A stretch of 64,000 nucleotides of DNA from Mytilus edulis (taxonomy: Eukaryota). The translations under genes and the position numbers were made by a program. Below, piece by piece: positions 3,712-63,037 of the stretch (positions are counted from its first letter, which is position 1; each line of letters opens with the position of its first letter). The notes beneath the pieces were generated by a model. The model made no database searches and was not told the DNA's origin. It saw only the letters and a program-made list of their open reading frames with translations. The stretch lies in contig NC_092345.1 in NCBI RefSeq assembly GCF_963676685.1, positions 15,562,001 through 15,626,000 of the forward strand, read 5' to 3'.

Positions 3712-3878
3712 ATATATAGATATAGGCAGATGTGGTATGAGTGCAAATGAGTCAACTCTCCATCCTAGTAACAATTTATAAAAATAAACCATTATAGGTC
3801 ATTATAGGTCAAGGTACTGCCTTCAACAGAGAGCCTTGGCTCACACCGAACAGCAAGCTATAAAGGGACCCAAAAATT
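3712..3878 (-). mobile_element. 3'-terminal tail fragment of the Penelope-like family
   Basis: Reverse complement matches 17985-18133 (ctttatagcttg..ttcggtgtgagccaaggctc..ttgaaggc..gagagttg..cataccacatct..cctatatctat). Confidence 0.85.
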
Positions 3879-15744: not shown

Positions 15745-16022
15745 AAACACAAAACTCCAATCCTTGTATCTATGATGAGTTGTTTGTACTCAATTTAAAA
15801 TGTCTTACAATTGTTTTAGCAGAGTATAACAAAAATACCGAACTCCAAGGCAATAAAGACTGACCAAATCAAACGCGTTCAATATACATGTATTTGTATA
15901 TTACACACAGTCGGTACGTTCAATATACATGTATTTGTATATTACACACAGTCGGTACGATATACATGTATTTGTATATTACACACAGTCGGTACGAATG
16001 GTGCGGCTATACATGTATTTTA

Positions 16023-17114
16023 GATAAAATACATGCTTTCAATGGTCCTTACAATTCTGTTGACAGTTATGATTTTTCTACTCTGTACACTACACTTCCA
16101 CACAATCTTATAAAGAAAAAGTTTTTGTATTTGATAAAATGGTCTTTCGAAAAATCTCATTGTAATTTTATTTGCTGTAACTCGTTTAAGGCCTTTTTCT
16201 GTAACGAAAAGGGAAAGTATGCTAGATACACTTACTGGAAATGTGAGGATATGATTGAAGCTTTAAACTTTCTGCTTGATAACATTTATGTACGTTTCGG
16301 CGATAAAGTGTATCGTCAGGTAGTAGGTATTCCTATGGGCACCAACTGTGCCCCTTTAATAGCAGATTTATTTCTATATTGCTATGAATCTCAGTTTATG
16401 ACCAAACTCAGTAAAGACCCATCATTGTTACATTTGGTTGATACATTCAAAAATACCTACCGTTATCTGGATGATATTTTTTCGTTGAATAATCCAGACT
16501 TCTCTAAATATACTTCAGAAATTTACCCAAACGAACTTACTTTAACTAAATCTAACATAAACAGCAGCAGTTGTCCTTTTCTAGATTTAGACATTTCAAT
16601 TTCAAACGGGAAACTTCACACTAAAATTTACGACAAAAGAGACGATTTTTCATTTCCTATTGTTAATTTTCCTTTTTTAGATGGCGATGTGCCTTTGGCT
16701 CCATCATACGGTGTTTATATATCGCAACTCGTTCGGTTTGCCCGTGTGTGTTCTGATGTCATAGATTTTAACGAACGTAATCAATGCATCACTGGTAAAT
16801 TGTTGTGTCAGGGATTTCGATACCATAAATTACTTAAAACTTTTACTAAATTCTTTCATAGATACAAAGATTTGATTAGTAAATTTGGCTATACCTGTAG
16901 AAAGCTTATTAAAAATGGTATTTCACATCCTAAATTTTATGGTAATATTGTACTTAAAGCGAGGAAATCACTATGTGATCCTTGTAAACTCATCGAACCT
17001 TTAAACAAACTTATAAGTAAGGGTTATCGTACCAATATTGTAATAAGATCTCTGAATATAGTTCACATTGGCACTAATATTGATATTGTCATTAGCAAAT
17101 TAAAACATAAGTAA
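16023..17114 (+). CDS. Penelope-like reverse transcriptase, C-terminal 363 aa, uninterrupted
   Basis: Motifs YDFSTLYTTLPH, YRQVVGIPMGTNCAPLIADLFL, YRYLDD, CPFLDL, thumb IYDKRDDFSFPIVNFPFL..SYGVYISQLVRFAR; TAA stop. Confidence 0.93.
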   Translation, partial: DKIHAFNGPYNSVDSYDFSTLYTTLPHNLIKKKFLYLIKWSFEKSHCNFICCNSFKAFFCNEKGKYARYTYWKCEDMIEALNFLLDNIYVRFGDKVYRQVVGIPMGTNCAPLIADLFLYCYESQFMTKLSKDPSLLHLVDTFKNTYRYLDDIFSLNNPDFSKYTSEIYPNELTLTKSNINSSSCPFLDLDISISNGKLHTKIYDKRDDFSFPIVNFPFLDGDVPLAPSYGVYISQLVRFARVCSDVIDFNERNQCITGKLLCQGFRYHKLLKTFTKFFHRYKDLISKFGYTCRKLIKNGISHPKFYGNIVLKARKSLCDPCKLIEPLNKLISKGYRTNIVIRSLNIVHIGTNIDIVISKLKHK

Positions 17115-17248
17115 ATTTCATTATCTTTTGAGGCGAGATGTATAGAGACACAGACACGTTAACTTTTATTTCTATAGAAGTCGCTCTTCACTATACTACT
17201 ACCTGTCGATACATTTATTTTTGGCATTGCACAAGTCATGTCTTCTTT

Positions 17249-17306
17249 GACTATTAATGACGTTAAAATACTAAATCCCTGTGATGTGTTTTAGTCGATT
17301 TTAGTC
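17249..17306 (+). promoter_or_regulatory. Eukaryotic SECIS element (form 2) in the retroelement 3' UTR
   Basis: Helix I gacta/tagtc; core ATGAc (17257) / cGAt (17296); 10-bp helix II gttaaaatac/gtgttttagt; apical AAA 17273-17275; ministem atc/gat. Confidence 0.85.
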
Positions 17307-17789
17307 TCTGATGCATGATTTTTTATTATTAATTGGTTTTGGCTTTTAACTAGCTGTCAGTAACTGCGAGTACTCTCAAATCGTATTTTCTTGTTAATTC
17401 GACCTGTTGATACTGTTTATAATGCTTTTTTGTCATTTTTTATTTATACGGATCTTGTCTGTACACCAGCTTTGATTATTTGTAATATCTTCACTTATTC
17501 TTACAACATTTGTATAAACTTCAAGATTATAAAAAAAACCGGTTTTTTTTCTAAAGTGAACATTGATTGGTTAAATATTTCTCAGTCATGTCCTGTTTTT
17601 GAATTTGTTTGTTAGCTTTTTGGTCATGAATGTTTGTCTCTAATATTTAATTAACTGTGCATTTGTATTCAGATATCGCAGATCAAATTTATTCGTTCAT
17701 TGTTTAATCATACGTTTTTTGATTGAGTTAAGTCTGCCAATTGATATTTTATCGTATGTTTTTCTTTGTTGTGATGTTATGCTATTGTT

Positions 17790-17873
17790 TCAGAAAAAGG
17801 GAGAAGGTTTGGATCCATTAAAACGTTTAATCCCGCTGCAAATGTTTGCACCTGTCCTAAGTCAGGAATCTGA
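17790..17873 (+). ncRNA. Twister-like self-cleaving ribozyme, P5-type permutation, intact core
   Basis: P5 tcaga/tctga; P2 TCCC/GGGA; GA-AGG pairing with loop TCCT; TAA at 17828-17830; GC pairing with loop aaGT; P3 tgcaa/ttgca; P4 cctg/cagg. Confidence 0.8.
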
Positions 17874-20382
17874 TGTACAGTAGTTGTCGTTTGTTTATGT
17901 AATATATACGTGTTTCTCGTTTCTCGTTTTGTTTATATAGATTAGACCGTTGGTGTTCCCGTTTGAATGGTTTTACACTAGTAATTTTGGGGCCCTTTAT
18001 AGCTTGTTGTTCGGTGTGAGCCAAGGCTCCGTGTTGAAGGCCGTACTTTAACCTATAATGGTTTACTTTTTAAATTGTTATTTGTATGGAGAGTTGTCTC
18101 ATTGGCACTCACACCACATCTTCCTATATCTATTTGTATATTACACACAGTCGGTACGTTCAATATACATGTATTTGTATATTACACACAGTCGGTACGA
18201 TATACATGTATTTGTATATTACACACAGTCGGTACGAATGGTGCGGCTATACATGTATTTGTATATTACACACAGTCGGTACGTTCAATATACATGTATT
18301 TGTATATTACACACAGTCGGTACGATATACATGTATTTGTATATTACACACAGTCGGTACGTTCAATATACATGTATTTGTATATTACACACAGTCGGTA
18401 CGATATACATGTATTTGTATATTACACACAGTCGGTACGAATGGTGCGGCTATACATGTATTTGTATATTACACACAGTCGGTACGATATACATGAATTT
18501 GTATATTACACACAGTCGGTACGAATGGTGCGGCTATACATGTATTTGTATATTACACACAGTCGGTACGTTCAATATACATGTATTTGTATATTACACA
18601 CAGTTGGTACGAATGGTGCGGCTATACATGTATTTGTATATTACACACAGTCGGTACGTTCAATATACATGTATTTGTATATTACACACAGTCGGTACGA
18701 ATGGTGCGGCTATACATGTATTTGTATATTACACACAGTCGGTACGTTCAATATACATGTATTTGAATATTACACACAGTCGGTACGAATGGTGCGGCTA
18801 TACATGTATTTGTATATTACACACAGTCGGTACGAATGGTGCGGCTATACAAGTATAAAACAGAAAATTATAACAATAAAAAAAACAAGAACATCATATG
18901 CAAAACATTTCAATCGAAATAAGTTTTTGGCAAATATAAAAAAGAAGATGTGGTATGATTGCCAATGAGACAACAAGAGACAAAAATTACACAGAAATTA
19001 AGAATGTAGCATTGCCTATAAGTTGAGATGAGTCTATATGGTTCTTCAATTTGGGCATGTTCTTTAAAATGTTATTACAAGCAACCTCAGAGAAATTTAA
19101 TTACCTTTTAAAGCTCAATAGATATTTCATTATGTCCTTGTTTATTATATACTATGCCGACTCTAAATAAAATTAAATTACTATTACCATTTATCATATT
19201 TACGTATTTATATAACCCTAGATTTCAAACGTTAAAGTTTGAGCGTTACTGATGAAGGTGCACCCAGGAGATTTTCATTTTAAATTATATCAAACTTGCG
19301 ATTTTTTTTTATTATTAATTAAATAAATGACATGAGAAATCGAAATAAACAAGGACATTCCTGCATTTTTCTTCCTAATTCATTTGTTATTATCGGGAAG
19401 TATCTGGGTTAAATGATAATATTAGCCGATAAAACAAAAGACGATTTTTGTCCTATAACAATATCTCGGCAGGAAAATCTCTCAATCCTTTGACATTGAT
19501 TTTATTTATCCATGAAAGTGAAAAATGGATGAAAAGTTAGTTTTATCTACAACTGTGTGAACATTGGATTGTTAATGATGATAAAACAGGAAACCTACGA
19601 CACAACACGAAAATGCAACGACCATGATGGGATACTTGCGCTTTTCAAAATTCCATTTGGCCCTTGGTCAAACCCAGCAATGAATTTGATAGACAAAGAC
19701 AAATTATTTTAAAATTTCATCTTCATTCTTAAATTATTATTAGTTTAAAATGACTGATGCGAAATATTTGTTGACACAAGTCTTTTCGTAGTTGCTCCTA
19801 CATCGTTTTTATTGTTATCTGTCACATTTGCCTGATCCGGGGTGATCGACATCGATTTACCATATCCAGAGATCAAAATATGTTCATCTTTTCCTTGGTA
19901 GAATATAGATTTGATGAGTTAGTGGATAAATTGATGGAACCCATTTAAAACCTACCCTTTTGTTGAGCTGTCACGGGATTATAACAGACACTATACTTTG
20001 ATGAAAATTAGGTAGTCATTTTTCATCATAGCATATCGATTGAATATAAGAATAGGACATTCTTTTTACAGATCCTGGTCGTCTTATCAAATGTAATCAT
20101 CAAAATGGCTTCATATGAAATCATTTTCATGATACCGTCTACATATTAGTATATCATTAAAAATGTTCTCGGAGTTTCTTTTTTCTTTCCTTCTTTGAGT
20201 TTTTTTTTCTAGAATTGTTAAAATCTTTATTTAAATCTGCTACAAAAAAAATAGTGCGAGCTGTATTTTTTTTTTCTTTTTCACGCAAGCTCAAGTCAAA
20301 ATAGAGAAAACGACATGTAATACACTATATCAAACCATTATCCTGTTTTCCCTGTGTGTTTTGGGGCACACTTAACATTGAG

Positions 20383-21157
20383 AAGAGACAACACCCCGAT
20401 CAGAAAACGGGCAAAGACCACCAATGAGTCTTCAACGCAGCAAGAACATCCAGCACCCGGGGGACCTCCGAGGTGGTCCTCAGCTGGCCCCCTCAATAAA
20501 ATTGTTTACTAGTTCAGTGAAAATGGACGTCACACTAAACTCCAAAACACATAAATGAACTAAAATTTGAAAACATTCAAAACTCATTTTAAACTAACAA
20601 AGGCCAGAAGCTCCTGATTGAGACAGATGCAAAAATGCGGAGCGGTTAAACATGTTTTGTGATATCTCAACCCTCCCCTTTACATCTAGCAAATGTAGAA
20701 TAAAGAAACACATAGCAATATGCACAAAAAATTAAGCAAAATGACAATGATACATAAATTAACAAACTAAAGACTATACTAACAGTTTATGACATGCCAG
20801 CTCCAGACCTAAATTAACTGATTGAAAGATTGTGTCTTCATTACATTAAAATCAAGTACAATCTCTCCCTAACGGGGTTCAGTATCATACCATCGCAAAA
20901 TATATGAGAATAACATTTCCCGTATCATACCAACAACTGGTTTTAGAATAAATGTGTTTCCGTTGCAAAGACCCTATGAGTGAATCATTATTACTACCAA
21001 AATATCCAAACCTTAATAACTTGACGACATTTTTGTGCTTTGTAAAGAATATTTCCATAAAATATTGGATGTGAAATACCTGAACGTATCAGATGTCTGA
21101 ATGTTGAGTTGTATTTTGTGATATCGAAAACCCTGGTGTAATATTTTTTCCGTAATA
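20383..21157 (-). mobile_element. Degraded 3' part of a second Penelope-like subfamily (RT C-terminus, SECIS relic, twister relic, tail)
   Basis: ITEKILHQGFRYHK and RHLIRSGISHPIFYGNILYKAQK match ITGKLLCQGFRYHK and RKLIKNGISHPKFYGNIVLKARK. SECIS relic ~20839-20906; twister relic ~20601-20690. Confidence 0.85.
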
Positions 21158-23770: not shown

Positions 23771-25756
23771 TACTGTATAAACATTAGGAGATGTGATATG
23801 ATTTCTATTGAGACACAATCCGACAGTGTTTAGTTGACGTATAGGCGTAAGCGAATCCATATTATATAGTTCATATAAAAGAAAGGATACGAGGTATCCA
23901 TCCATAACACAAAACCAGTACATGCACAGCAAAAACACAAAAAGGAAAAAGAACAGCACTTGTGTTGCATTCCAAGGTCACAGTGAGGCCTTTAACTTTA
24001 ACAACATTTCTCATCTCAGTGAAAGTTTAAGGCCATCTCTAGCACCGGATTGAGTTGAATTATTCGCAAAATCATTATTTAAGTAAACAATTATGTTTTG
24101 ATAACGCTTCATTGAAAGGCGATACTATATTTCGTTCATAAAAAAAATTACCTCTTGCAATGTTCATGCCTTTCATTACTTTGATTAAATCTTCTTTTTG
24201 GACAAGCTTTTACTTTTTGACGACGAAAATGTTATTGTTCATTTTCTTCAAGTTACCCTAAAAAAACAAAGGTTCGTTACAATATTTGTTTTAATGAAAA
24301 TCAACTACCACTATTTTTTTTATTTTTTTGGCAGAATGATGTCTGCTAGACGAGCACATAAAGAATACAATTTGAACTTAATGATAAACTTTGCACGTGT
24401 GATAGCTTTTTCAACAAAAAACATAATTGTCCTAATAACTGAGCTAATTGAACTATTTATTTAAGACATTTCTGTTTTTTAAGTCTCCCGTATTTGTTCT
24501 TATGCAAATGGCCACTTCTAATCGGCTATAATACAATCAATTAAATACTTTTTCTGCTCTGTAAAAATCGAGAGTGAAATAATGTTTTGTTTTCTGTGAA
24601 AGAACATAATTTGTCAAGTCGACATGTTCAAGTGGATTGTCTTAAAGGATCAATTTAAATAGTGAAGCTAGAGAGCCGTTATAAAAACATATGGAAATGA
24701 CAAAAGAGATATCTCACGCCAAAACAGTCCTCGCGTGATTTTACGAGAGGCGGGTTTCCCTTGTGTATTGGCTTGTCAGAGTAATGAGATGTAAGAAATT
24801 GTAAAAATCAAAAGAAATAAATCGTCGTACAATGATTTACAGTTTGGTTCATCTAGAGGCTTCATGTTATTTGGAATCAATCTTTAATATGTTTTTACTT
24901 CTTGATGTAATTACTGAAAATAATATGCAATAATAACGTGCAATGCTAGAATTATGTATTATCTAATATGAAAATGCTTCTTTGATATTTTCACTGCATA
25001 CATTTCCAATAAATCTGTGCACATTGAAACGTTAACTTTGTCAATCATGTTTAATAACAAAAGGCTTTATATCGCAGATATAATAATAGATTATTACGCC
25101 AATTCGTCCCTTTGTTTGCAATGTAAGATGTTTGGCGTACATTTCCACTTTTGCAGTGCAGTTTGACTTAAACTGTTTTTATGCCAGCTAATAAAATTCG
25201 TGAATGGTGACATTGAAAATATCATAATTACCAAAGGGTTGACACATCTGCTGACAATCAGTTGCCTCTCAACTGTAATACCTGTCTATAGTAGCTCGGT
25301 ACGTTAGTCCGGCTAGTATGGAAATACGCATATCAGAGAATACAACGAACATGTAACACATTACTAGTATACATTTGGTAAATTACAAATGATCCCCCTT
25401 ATACGGATAGTTCATGCAAAGATCTCATAACTGGCTAGTTTTATTTTTCCTTGGTTGTAAGTTCGGACCGAGGTGTGTTTGATATTGATCTTAAGGGATT
25501 GCCATTTTCCCTGATCAAGGTTGAACTTGGCGGTTGTCTCCGATTGCCATTTTCCCTGCTCAAGGTTCAACTTGGAGGTTCTTTCCGAGTACTCAGGCTT
25601 CCTCCGCAAATAAAAAAAACATTGAAACACTATAGCAACCAAACAAACAAAAAAATCTCTTCTGATATTTCCACGTCTCGTTTTTTTCGTATGCCAATGC
25701 GTAGGCCATTCACTCTTCACTGACTGAAGTTTATTTGTTGGAATGGATATACTCTC

Positions 25757-25832
25757 ACGGGGAGGGTTGAACGCTCACAAACATGTTTAACCCCGCCACA
25801 TTCATAATGTGCCTGTCCCAAGTCAGGAGCCT
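25757..25832 (+). ncRNA. Twister-like ribozyme copy (core intact, P5 5' strand missing) heading a retroelement tail running to ~26090
   Basis: cggg-GA-GGG-t-tgaacgctca-ca-aacatgtt-TAA-CCCC-GC-cacat/atgtg-cctg-TCCC-AAGT-cagg. Confidence 0.75.
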
Positions 25833-26564
25833 GTAGTTCAGGGGTTAACGTCGGTTCATATCTGTCATATTTGTTTTTCGTTCGTTAACTGTTATAAATT
25901 AGGCCGTTAGTTTTCTCTATTGAATTGATTCATATTTTTTCATGTTGGAGCCTTTTATAACCAACCACACGGTATGGACTTTTCTCATTGTTGAAGGTCG
26001 TACGGTTGCGTATAATTGCTAACATCCACTTCATTTGAACTTTGGTGGATAGCTGTATCATTGGCAACCATACCACACCTCCTTAATTATATATGAGGCA
26101 TTTGTATCATGTACTAACTTTATTTAGCATTTAGTCCATCATTTAATGAATTTTGAAAAAGAGTTTTATAATTATTTAGAAAAATATACGCAAGAGTAGT
26201 ACCTTCATTTACAGCTGAGTATAGAAGCCTCTTGAACAAGGTTAGGTTTTAAGGACTCACAACAGACGAACACAACAGGTTTTGGAGTTTGTTGATTCTT
26301 GTCTTTGGGTTGTTTTGTGGTCTTGGAGTTTTCCTGTTTTTGGATGAGCGTAACTGTCATAAATTCATATCTTGGACGTTATTGATGAAACTTTCACAAT
26401 GTTCCTCTAATTTTAAATGACTTAGTGTAACCATCGGAAAAAACATTTTTTAAACTTTTGACATTGCTGGTATTAAATGCAGCATATTATATTACTATTT
26501 TTACTATTCAGAAAAATCAACCATGCTAAGGAAGTTTATCATAACGTATGTAATTATGTAACTG

Positions 26565-36147: not shown

Positions 36148-36222
36148 CAGTGATAATGAATGCCATACTAATTTCCAAATTATACACAAGAAACCAAAAT
36201 TAAATAATACAAGACTAACAAA

Positions 36223-36318
36223 GGCTAGAGGCTCCTGACTTGGGACAGGCGCATAAATGCGACGGGGTTAAACATGTTTCTGAGATCTCACCCCCCCCCC
36301 CCCCCTATACCTCTAGCC
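36223..36318 (-). ncRNA. Twister-like ribozyme copy with a 9-bp P5
   Basis: Minus strand: ggctagagg-tata-(G)15-tgagatctca-g-aaacatgtt-TAA-CCCC-GT-cgcat/atgcg-cctg-TCCC-AAGT-cagg-ag-cctctagcc. The GA-GGG segment is obscured by a G run. Confidence 0.7.
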
Positions 36319-38813
36319 TAAGTTTCAGTTCAAGAGAAGTCTGGGTCTGATGTCAGAAGATGCATATACGGACCCTGGATTTAAATCAGTTATGATCTGG
36401 CGGTTTTTGTCTTTTTTTCAAAATACATATTTTCGATTGTGACTATCTTTAGTTCCGAATCTTTCTATCATTCTAATTAATTTAGTTTAAATGAAAATAA
36501 GGAACTTAGAATTAAACACTGTTGAAGAGAAACTACATATTCGGGTTAAATTCACCTCAGTTTGTTAATTCAAGTTTGACATCTAACATCTTAATCCGTA
36601 ATCCACATTTACGTGACAACCTTAAATTGTTTATTGTATTTTATCAATCGAATATCCTCACACAGGAAACTGAAACGAATATGTTATTTGTAATGGTATT
36701 TATCAAAACTAAAATGATTGAAAATATATTTGTAGGATATGAATTTGCCTAATAAGCGAATAATTATAATATATAGATTTCAACATCTTCAATAGAAAGA
36801 TTACTGATAAGATGTCCAAAATATAAGTACATGTATATTGCGATTAGTGCTATATAGTATGTCAATGATATTGAATGCCCGCTGAGTGTAAAACATATTT
36901 CAGCTTAAATCTTTATTTCTGTAAACCCCATTTATTTACTTTCATAGCCTCATATATGTACATGTACATGGTATTTGAAACAGAAACAATATACCGTCGT
37001 ATATTACAAAAATTGAGAATGGAAATGGGGAATATATAAAAAAGACAAAAACCCGACTATAGAGCAGACCGTGCAAGGGCTGTATAGCCAGTCAAGGTCG
37101 TTAAAAACTTCCATTTGTTGTATAGAGCAGACAAAAGAGGAAGGCCTATATTACGGGTCTGCAATGTAGAGAGAAACTCATGCGTATACATACATGCATT
37201 ATTGTATGCACATGCTTGGACTTATAAATGCATATATATATACTTGTACAAGTCCCAGATTGTGTTATAAATTATTTCTTATAAACATACAGGAACATTT
37301 TAATGCTAATTCAAACGCACAGGTGTCAATATCTGCAAGTCTACCGGTTTTATAAGTTGTCATTTAAAAAAGTGAAATTATAGTGTATTTTAACAACAAA
37401 AAATTATGAATGAATTTATTTAAAAAAATTCCAATCCCTTAAAAACGAGGCATCATCATATATACTTATAAAACAGCTCAAATTCTATTTTGTTAACTTG
37501 GAGTAGAAAACTTACAATATATTTTATCTCATTGAAACATGAACGTGGACCCCATTGAGAACACCTTGGATTGAAAGATTGCAAATCTACTGACCAATGG
37601 AATGCTTTGGATTTAGAACGCGGACCTCAACGAGAACACCTACATCGATAACACACTATAATCTGTAGACCGTCAGACAGATAGCAAGAATTCCAGATTT
37701 CGTTTTCTTTTATTTTAAGTAAGGTCACAATATGGAAGAATATATGCTGCAAATATACAATTCCTTGATGCTGCTGTGCATGCCTGATTGACAAAGATTT
37801 AATCAAATTCATAAAAATATGTAATAACAATTTAAGTGTTTCTGTATTAAGATTGGGATTTAAAATATGCATTTTATGTACTTGTTTTGGTTTGAATTTG
37901 TTTATTCAAATCTCGAGAGAACAGCTGATGTTAGCTGATCTCTTAAGCCGTAACAGTAGTGGTAGATATTCACAGATTTTTTTTATATAAAAACACACTA
38001 GTACAATTACATATGACAATAATAATGTGTCTGTTTTATAAACCAGTTTAGTCTTAGTGTGCATAATTATGTCTCCGCTGAATATAATTCAATGTTAGAT
38101 AAACATTAAAAGCTGTATAATTATCAATAAATTCATTTTCAAAATCATTTATTTATTTAGGCTTAATTAAAATATTCATCAAATAACGAATGAATATAAG
38201 AAGATGTGGTATGCTTGTCAATAATTTCATTCACCGTACATGTGGAATACCGTATGGTAGTTTTTTGGTCTAAATAAGAGTACATCTACTACATGTCTTT
38301 GATTTAACAAATGATAAAAGATCTGGCATAAAAACATGATTCTCAATATAATCTAAAAATTGAGGAGAAAGCCAGATTAAGACAGTTATACAATTTAAAG
38401 AATACCAATCTTTAAGTTTTATTACTTAGAGATATACTGTCCCCCTTCTTTTAACCTACACGAAAACTTCACGAGAGCCAATGATTAAATATCCCCCTTG
38501 TTTTCCGTATATATATTAAGTAACTGAAGAAGCAATTCAAATGCCTAAGGATATTCAATTTGTTTCAATATTGCCGAAAACTGAGGCTACTATAATTTTT
38601 ATACTGTTTTTACATGTAGTAGTCTCAGCCGAAAACAATACATAATATTGACAATATAAGCAAGTGTGACATACCAATAAAAAATTTGTTGTTTGGGATT
38701 ATTCATAGTTCACTAGTATTCCTTTCACGGATTTGGCTATACTTTTTGGACCTTTTGGATTATAGCTCTTCGTCTTTTACATTAGCTTTTGATTTCATAT
38801 ATTTTGGCCTCGA

Positions 38814-48569: not shown

Positions 48570-49334
48570 TGTTCCGGACCATATAAGTATTTGGACCTCA
48601 TGGGATAACTATTACTGAACAGCAAAATGTCGATTAGGAAGATAACTTCCAAAATTGTCTTAATGAACTGTTAAACAAGAGTTCAACTGTTTTACTAACT
48701 GACAAAAAAAAATCGATATAATAAAGAGTCTAATAATTGATACTAGAGACGGACAGTAAACAGATACACCTAACTTAAGACAATTAATTGAAAGACAATG
48801 CGTTTCAACTTGTAACTTGTGCTGTTTTGGGTAGCCTCTGAACTATAAAATTATCACATTCCATGTAACCGTCATTGTTATAGATAAGTATATTGTATTA
48901 TTGAATCGTTTCTAATGTATACCTATATGGTCCCAAATTGGGGTTTCCCTTGGGCACTTATATTTTTCGCCACATTATTACTTTTTTCGCCAAGTAACAT
49001 TAATATATATTTCGCTTAAAAAAAATTCTACCCCACCCCACCCTAAACCGTTAGTTTTCCCGTTTGAATGGTTTTGAACTAGTTATTTTGGGGGCCCTTT
49101 ATAGCTTGTTGTTCGGTCGGTGTGAGCCAAGGCCCCGTGTTGAAGACCGTACCTTGGCCTATAATGGTTTACTAAATTGTTATTTGGATGGAAAGTTGTC
49201 TCATCGGCACTCATACCACATCTTTCTATATCTATCATATGGTTCGACCATACGAGTACAGTTTGACCATATGAGTATACTCATATGGTCGTGACCATAC
49301 GCGTATGGTCCTTATACTCATATGGTCGGGAACA
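48570..49334. mobile_element. Palindrome-rich MITE nested in the CAC element, itself containing a retroelement tail (49047-49236)
   Basis: TGTTCCGGACCATATAAGTAT.. / ..ATACTCATATGGTCGGGAACA. Perfect palindromes at 49265-49290 and 49293-49310. Confidence 0.65.
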
Positions 49335-51662: not shown

Positions 51663-52339
51663 GGGAACGTGTCAAAGAGACACCAATACGACCAAGAGCA
51701 GAAAACAGATCAAGGCCACCAGGTCGTATTGTCCAATGAGACTTTAACGCAGCGAAAAATCCTGCACGCAGAAGGCGGGCTTCTGTTGGTCCTCTTAACA
51801 ATAATGTATACTATACATGTTGTTCAGTGAACTTGACACAACATTATTCTTCGAATCATACAAAAGAACCAAAATATTAAAAAAAAAACATACAAGACTA
51901 ACAAAGGCTAGAGGTTCCTGACATAGGACACGCGCAAAGATTCGCCGATGTTAAACATTTTTGGTGATATCTCAACCCGCCCTCTTTACCTCTAGCCAAT
52001 GTAAAATGTAAAATGTACATCGAAACTCATGCAATTTGAATTTGAAAAAACCTTCCAAACCTATGTTGGAAAAGGAAACAGAATAAACTACGCAGAGTAA
52101 CAACGATTAACAACAATTAACAAAGGACTACAGTTACTAGTAGTTACTGACATGACAGTTTTAGACCTCAATTTATAAACTGATTGAAAGATTGTCTCCA
52201 TCATATGGAAATCAGTTAGTCTCTCCTGTTAGAAGCTTAGTGTCGGGTCATCATAAATGGAGGAGAAAAACATAGCCCTTTTCATGTCAACAACTACTTT
52301 TAGAATACATATGTTTCCTTCCGTTGCAAAGACCCTATG
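51663..52339 (-). mobile_element. Degraded 3' region of the second Penelope-like subfamily (SECIS relic, conserved block, twister relic, tail)
   Basis: Colinear with 20383-20980. SECIS relic ~52201-52260 retains ATGA..AA..GA; twister relic 51906-51997 retains P5 ggctagagg/cctctagcc. Confidence 0.8.
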
Positions 52340-62853: not shown

Positions 62854-63037
62854 GCCGTTAGTTTTCTCATTTGAATTGTTTTACACTGTCATTTCGGGGC
62901 CTTTTATAGCTGACTATGTGGTATGGTCTTTGCTCATTATTGAAATCCGTACGGTGACCTATAGCTGTTAATTTCCGTGTCATTTGGTCGCTTGTGAAGA
63001 GTGGTTTTAGTGGCAATCATACCACATCTTCTTTTTA
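62854..63037 (+). mobile_element. 3'-terminal tail fragment of the Penelope-like family
   Basis: ccgttagttttctc..ggggccttttatagct..ccgtacggtgacctata..tggcaatcataccacatcttcttttt, matching 17945-18125. Similar copies lie near 9520, 25900, 34815, 44660, 45480 and 49047. Confidence 0.85.

Follow-up and report, generated by a model that had tools for sequence, protein, structure and literature searches.

In twister ribozymes the scissile bond precedes the first A of L1, and the type-P5 class among them is said to have been described by Roth et al. in 2014. Retrotransposon-borne variants are known as well: in Schistosoma mansoni, Perere-3 (RTE) retrotransposons carry twister T-variants at their 5' end in which P1 is weak or absent, yet activity both in vitro and in reporter cells is reported for them (PMC8501958). 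As regards Penelope-like elements, one account (PMC6765202, with reference to Cervera and de la Pena 2014 and Lunse et al. 2017) places minimal hammerheads in their pseudo-LTRs and describes them as slow, with a palindromic stem III loop, and as acting in the form of dimers. Within this group of elements, the order GIY-YIG, CxC, DKA and RT defines the Naiad clade (PMC8557442). The same study reports no canonical hammerhead in Naiads and does not mention twister, and, hammerheads having been regarded as the rule in Penelope-like elements, the hammerhead-free success of Naiad and of most Chlamys clades serves there as an argument that these elements may do without the ribozyme. In the collection of papers that we searched, none links twister to Penelope-like elements, Naiads or bivalves.

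Here we describe a motif in a 64,000-nt stretch of Mytilus edulis DNA (the window) that is very probably a twister-class fold under selection and that we are somewhat inclined to read, more specifically, as a circularly permuted (type-P5), P1-less twister variant that resides in the 3' UTR of a Naiad element, cuts itself and processes transcripts. An earlier note had proposed a twister ribozyme at 17790-17873(+) on the basis of compensatory changes between copies. The letters it quoted for that span and for the other copies are present in the window where it placed them, and the paired changes claimed for the copies at 25757(+) and 36223(-) are as listed, the copy at 20601(-) being a decayed one. 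Its span is exactly the inner P5 closure of a somewhat larger layout, 17778-17886(+), which can be drawn throughout in the type-P5 twister order (Table 1). From 5' to 3', the outer and then the inner strand of P5 lead through a short A-rich joint to the 3'-side strand of P2 and an L1 strand of five letters; after a segment of 21 nt come UAA, the second P2 strand, GC, the P3 hairpin, P4 with its eight-letter loop and the return strands of P5. Core letters stand at twister positions in UAA, in GC, in the GAGGG-type L1 strand and in 7 of the 8 letters of loop L4, and about 17 of them occupy the right structural places.

Table 1. Coordinates of the host element, of the parts of its twister-like motif and of the other motif copies in the window.
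Feature	Position	Strand	Pairing or remark
5'-truncated Naiad-type Penelope-like retroelement, family A	16021..18130	+	RT C-terminal half, stop 17114, then 3' UTR
Outer P5, 5' strand	17781..17788	+	pairs with 17877-17884; MFE fold, pair table
Inner P5, 5' strand	17790..17794	+	pairs with 17869-17873; five lineages, five different helices
P2, 3'-side strand	17799..17802	+	pairs with 17831-17834; three covarying states
L1 3' strand GAAGG	17803..17807	+	conserved G17803, then T1 strand 17805-17807
T1 pseudoknot	17805-17807 with 17856-17858 in loop L4	+	pair table
Palindrome 1, in P1's place	17811..17816	+	palindromic, letters differ, six lineages
Palindrome 2	17821..17828	+	last base is the base preceding the predicted cut
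L1 5' strand UAA	17828..17830	+	predicted scissile bond 17828/17829, by twister analogy
P2, 5'-side strand	17831-17834	+	pair table
T2 dinucleotide GC	17835-17836	+	pairs with 17861-17862
P3 hairpin	17837..17850	+	17837-17841 with 17846-17850; five different helices
P4, 4 bp, closing 8-nt loop L4	17851..17866	+	17851-17854 with 17863-17866; near invariant
P5 3' strands	17869..17884	+	inner 17869-17873, outer 17877-17884; MFE fold, pair table
Family D copy	25748..25847	+	88.7 bits; truncated inside the 5' strand of P5
Family C copy	36216..36320	-	92.6 bits; poly-G expansion over L1 3' strand
Decayed family C-like copy	20595..20699	-	50.5 bits
Decayed family C-like copy	51899..52005	-	52.3 bits

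The pairing pattern was followed in a table of nine lineages, compiled by coordinates from real copies, in which A, A2, A', B, C, D and E come from this genome and F and G from metagenome contigs of one other source. Five unrelated helices make up P5, and five P3, while P2 occurs in three states (4 bp in A, A', B and C, ambiguous in E and F). The T1 pseudoknot likewise has three states; its two double changes affect different pairs, one at one end in lineage A and one at the other end in E, F and G. In T2, GC (AC in E and F) pairs with GU, the last two letters of L4; since this loop ends in U and not in C, T2 consists of one Watson-Crick pair and a G-U wobble, the latter giving way to A-U in E and F through a one-sided change. 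The 5' strand of L1 reads UAA in lineages A-D and G and CAA in E and F. When 67 distinct copies are aligned with model R1, 87.9% of cells pair and covariation amounts to 0.203, against 0.127 after shuffling (0/500 reach the observed value) and 0.025-0.065 after sliding. The pseudoknots, which lie outside model R1, still show pairing in 84.9% of cells, compared with 7-47% in the slid controls, a count lowered by lineage F being one column out of register in this test. Unaided minimum free energy (MFE) folding with RNAfold recovers the helices P5, P2, P3 and P4 in lineages A, A' and B; the folds of C, D and F show an alternative hairpin in competition with P2/T1. Many of the compensations go back to few evolutionary events. 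Three contigs labelled human gut metagenome (L091, L094 and L114) were excluded from the model searches, and two further contigs (L148 and L172), which appeared in one pattern scan only with just a 16-nt chance match, were not used.

In database comparison the motif aligns with twister models, at low scores. The Rfam Twister-P5 model (RF02684) aligns both family C (23.1 bits, E 0.0032 for that search) and family B (17.6 bits, E 0.095) in this register, the 21-nt segment taking the position of the model's P1 insert, and both scores lie below the gathering score of 37.6 bits. The window copy obtains only 14.4 bits, on twister-P1. The Rfam search of the whole 64-kb window gave 0 matches, and RF02684 gave none over the genome among the 79/31236 candidates scored. 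A sceptical reader might hold that the likeness between copies reflects common descent only and that the twister drawing was fitted by eye, the more so as every Rfam score lies under the gathering score and the model-based R1 alignment leans towards nested helices. We deem this very improbable, given the correct placement of the core letters, the independent Rfam alignment of family C, the unaided MFE folds and the covariation in pseudoknots outside the model. On the contrary, the twister fold has gained in support since it was first proposed, through additional lineages, the covariation of both pseudoknots, the unaided folds and the Twister-P5 register, and the comparisons indicate that selection maintains this fold (P5, P2, P3, P4, T1 and, less clearly, T2) in the master elements.

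Other collections yielded several related observations. About a dozen IMG/VR viral contigs (L191, L200, L201, L202, L210, L215, L217, L232, L239 and L243) share one 76-nt stretch that contains the P4-L4 core of the motif and gives the same weak score with model R1; neither the Naiad RT nor a Naiad-type motif was found in viral contigs. Twister-like sequences of canonical order (type P1), in which L4 ends in U, are present in unrelated metagenomes (L079, L120, L137, L118, L082, L107 and L073) and score 25-47 bits on Rfam twister-P1. A Type I hammerhead match at L030:2955-3008 (+) reaches 27.7 bits (gathering score 34), and this sub-threshold match suggests that hammerhead-bearing repeats are held by this genome too.

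The motif is a fixed 3' UTR module of Naiad Penelope-like retroelements and not a free-standing repeat. The earlier note had treated it as a copy of a repeat, and repeated it is; what had escaped that description is its nature as part of a larger element. The ORF that ends at the stop codon carries RT motifs with a weak RVT_1 match, and its relatives number more than 100 copies at 94-100% amino acid identity in the 1.37-Gb genome, where further RT families are found at about 80% and 70% protein identity; the RT also has relatives in other animals. The window copy retains only the C-terminal half of the RT. A fuller copy, L056, from family C (the 70% RT family), has an N-terminal GIY-YIG domain, the CxC linker, the DKA motif and the C-terminal RT, as read from the pieces between in-frame TGA codons, which were searched apart. 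The loop-L4 core lies 3' of the stop codon in every RT family (by about 745, 450 and 392 nt), the motif being downstream of the RT stop across RT families that are 70-100% alike, and three-way identity in the 3' UTR peaks at the motif. It is situated on the sense strand, about 280-300 nt before the 3' end of the element; the element end near 18130 and the distance of 302 nt given for this copy by the earlier note were correct. Head-to-tail tandem insertion is seen in L139, and L056 has an inverted 32-nt terminal fragment.

Several features of these elements deserve separate mention. The family C ORF at L056:1624-4660 (+) has in-frame TGA at conserved cysteine places, in the zinc-finger region of GIY-YIG and after the DKA motif, one of these places being TGA in four copies; this ORF is a selenoprotein-type Naiad as described for clams. 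Both flanks of the window element (15885-15996 and 18125-18834) consist of the same tandem array, whose repeat unit measures about 36-44 bp; the element is thus embedded in a minisatellite, and the start of the 408-aa ORF is translated tandem array. A separate short non-autonomous repeat, first taken as a 385-bp element, was rejected because ragged 5' ends and RT remnants upstream identify such copies as 5'-truncated Naiad tails. Also rejected were a tandem retrozyme-like array, the copies being dispersed and not tandem units, and a tRNA-derived SINE head, the A-box-like letters in the 3' strand of P5 being found in families B and D only.

The 16-nt P4-L4 core has three exact occurrences in the window, and six when up to 3 mismatches are allowed (0.23 expected); the motif covariance model identifies five solid copies. 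Extrapolation from the window puts the genome total at roughly 10^5 motif copies. The last 190 nt of the element (17943-18133) are 70-87% like three other window segments (49044-49235, 3716-3875 and 62855-63031) that do not contain the twister-like part, and this shared tail is either a separate, more abundant module or the product of deeper 5' truncations. The small contig C499 (L001, L032) is identical to the window region along at least two stretches and probably represents this part of the assembly a second time, left uncollapsed.

The most conspicuous departure from twister concerns P1. Next to the predicted cut this helix is missing: there are no complementary strands, and two short palindromes are found instead, preserved as such in every lineage. 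The first is a perfect palindrome, centre included, in six lineages that differ in its letters, one of its variants being common to L037 and to the unrelated metagenome contig L179; the second is perfect or has one mismatch in all lineages. Such sites could conceivably act in DNA, binding dimeric factors in a pseudo-LTR internal promoter, with the RNA fold being incidental. Both palindromes do have self-complementary centres, like DNA sites, and pseudo-LTRs of Penelope-like elements contain promoters (PMC6765202), but this leaves unexplained why P2, P3, P5 and the pseudoknots vary by paired changes that are strand-asymmetric and in which G-U pairs occur too, and we consider it improbable. Somewhat less remote, if still tentative, is a dimer-activated twister, in which palindrome 2, by pairing with the corresponding palindrome of another copy, would provide a common P1 in trans; cutting would then be limited to tandem or paired transcripts and would yield unit-length RNAs that could be circularised. 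When the segment in P1's place is co-folded as a homodimer, it beats shuffled sequences only in lineage E.

Self-cleavage is predicted from the motif, and we judge the chances for and against this prediction to be even. The cut between U17828 and A17829 put forward in the earlier note has not found backing: besides the low Rfam scores and the absence of P1, no pile-up of read ends is seen at 17828/17829 in the raw RNA reads of one public run (X24). These reads cover the region on both strands at a depth of 50-200, and 17277 is the only position of the region in the list of read begins and ends, for which the cut-off is one fifth of the local depth. Most of the reads derive from thousands of passively transcribed copies; given this and the threshold, slow or conditional cutting is compatible with the absent pile-up. 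The 5' ends of truncated copies (about 100 copies) show no peak at the predicted site either. In an inverted copy beside a truncated one, at L020:1887 (+), likeness falls from ~90% to ~40% exactly at the first A, a single case of a 5' boundary at the predicted cut.

The missing read ends would also suit a twister-derived or twister-shaped RNA that no longer cuts and serves instead in recognition of the 3' UTR by the RT, in assembly of the ribonucleoprotein or in dimerisation through the palindromes. The fold is conserved although P1 is gone and T2 weakened, and the palindromes are conserved like retroelement dimerisation sites. Nonetheless, unpaired letters that in twister matter for catalysis only (the A that follows the cut, the G that opens the L1 3' strand and the AAG of L4) are invariant across RT families 30% apart, which is more than a mere scaffold would need, and we regard loss of cutting as possible but the less probable course. 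Under the favoured reading of a self-cutting P1-less twister, the Naiad transcript would be cut at U17828/A17829 slowly, or only when two copies are paired via their palindromes; cutting would process read-through or tandem transcripts and might enable the formation of RNA circles, a role equal to that proposed for hammerheads in other Penelope-like elements.

The significance of the motif is best seen against the systems outlined above. With the type-P5 twister (RF02684) it shares the order of parts, the L1 strands (UAA and a GAGGG-type strand), P2, GC, T1 and a weakened T2, as well as P4 with its 8-nt loop, and the Rfam model aligns families C and B; it differs from that class in having two palindromes and no P1 hairpin, an L4 that ends in U, a long two-part P5 and a P3 that is always present. 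It also makes available a natural P1-less, palindrome-bearing twister for tests of dimer control. The Perere-3 T-variants resemble it as retrotransposon-borne twister variants with a weak or absent P1, but they are of type P1 and lie at the 5' end of their element, which is defined by the cut, whereas the Naiad motif is of type P5, has a Penelope-like host and is situated about 300 nt before the 3' end of that element. The host itself agrees with the Naiad clade (PMC8557442) in its GIY-YIG, CxC, DKA and RT parts, in its in-frame TGA codons at cysteine positions, in its huge bivalve copy numbers and in its tandem and inverted insertions. A twister-like fold may compensate for the hammerhead that Naiads are reported to lack. 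The presence of a conserved twister-class module in the position of the hammerhead would reverse the argument for dispensability, for the need for a self-cleaving RNA would then be general and the class of ribozyme interchangeable; it would also mean that a bivalve genome holds on the order of 10^5 sites, many inside genes, at which transcripts could be cut. The hammerheads of Penelope-like elements come closest in context, sharing with the Naiad motif the kind of host, the region of the element, a palindrome that replaces the closing helix and the occurrence of tandem copies. They belong to another ribozyme class, and their dimer-dependent cutting is shown, whereas for the Naiad motif it is a guess. 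If dimer activation were true, no more abundant twister family would be known from an animal genome, and Penelope-like elements would offer a second, independent case of dimer gating.
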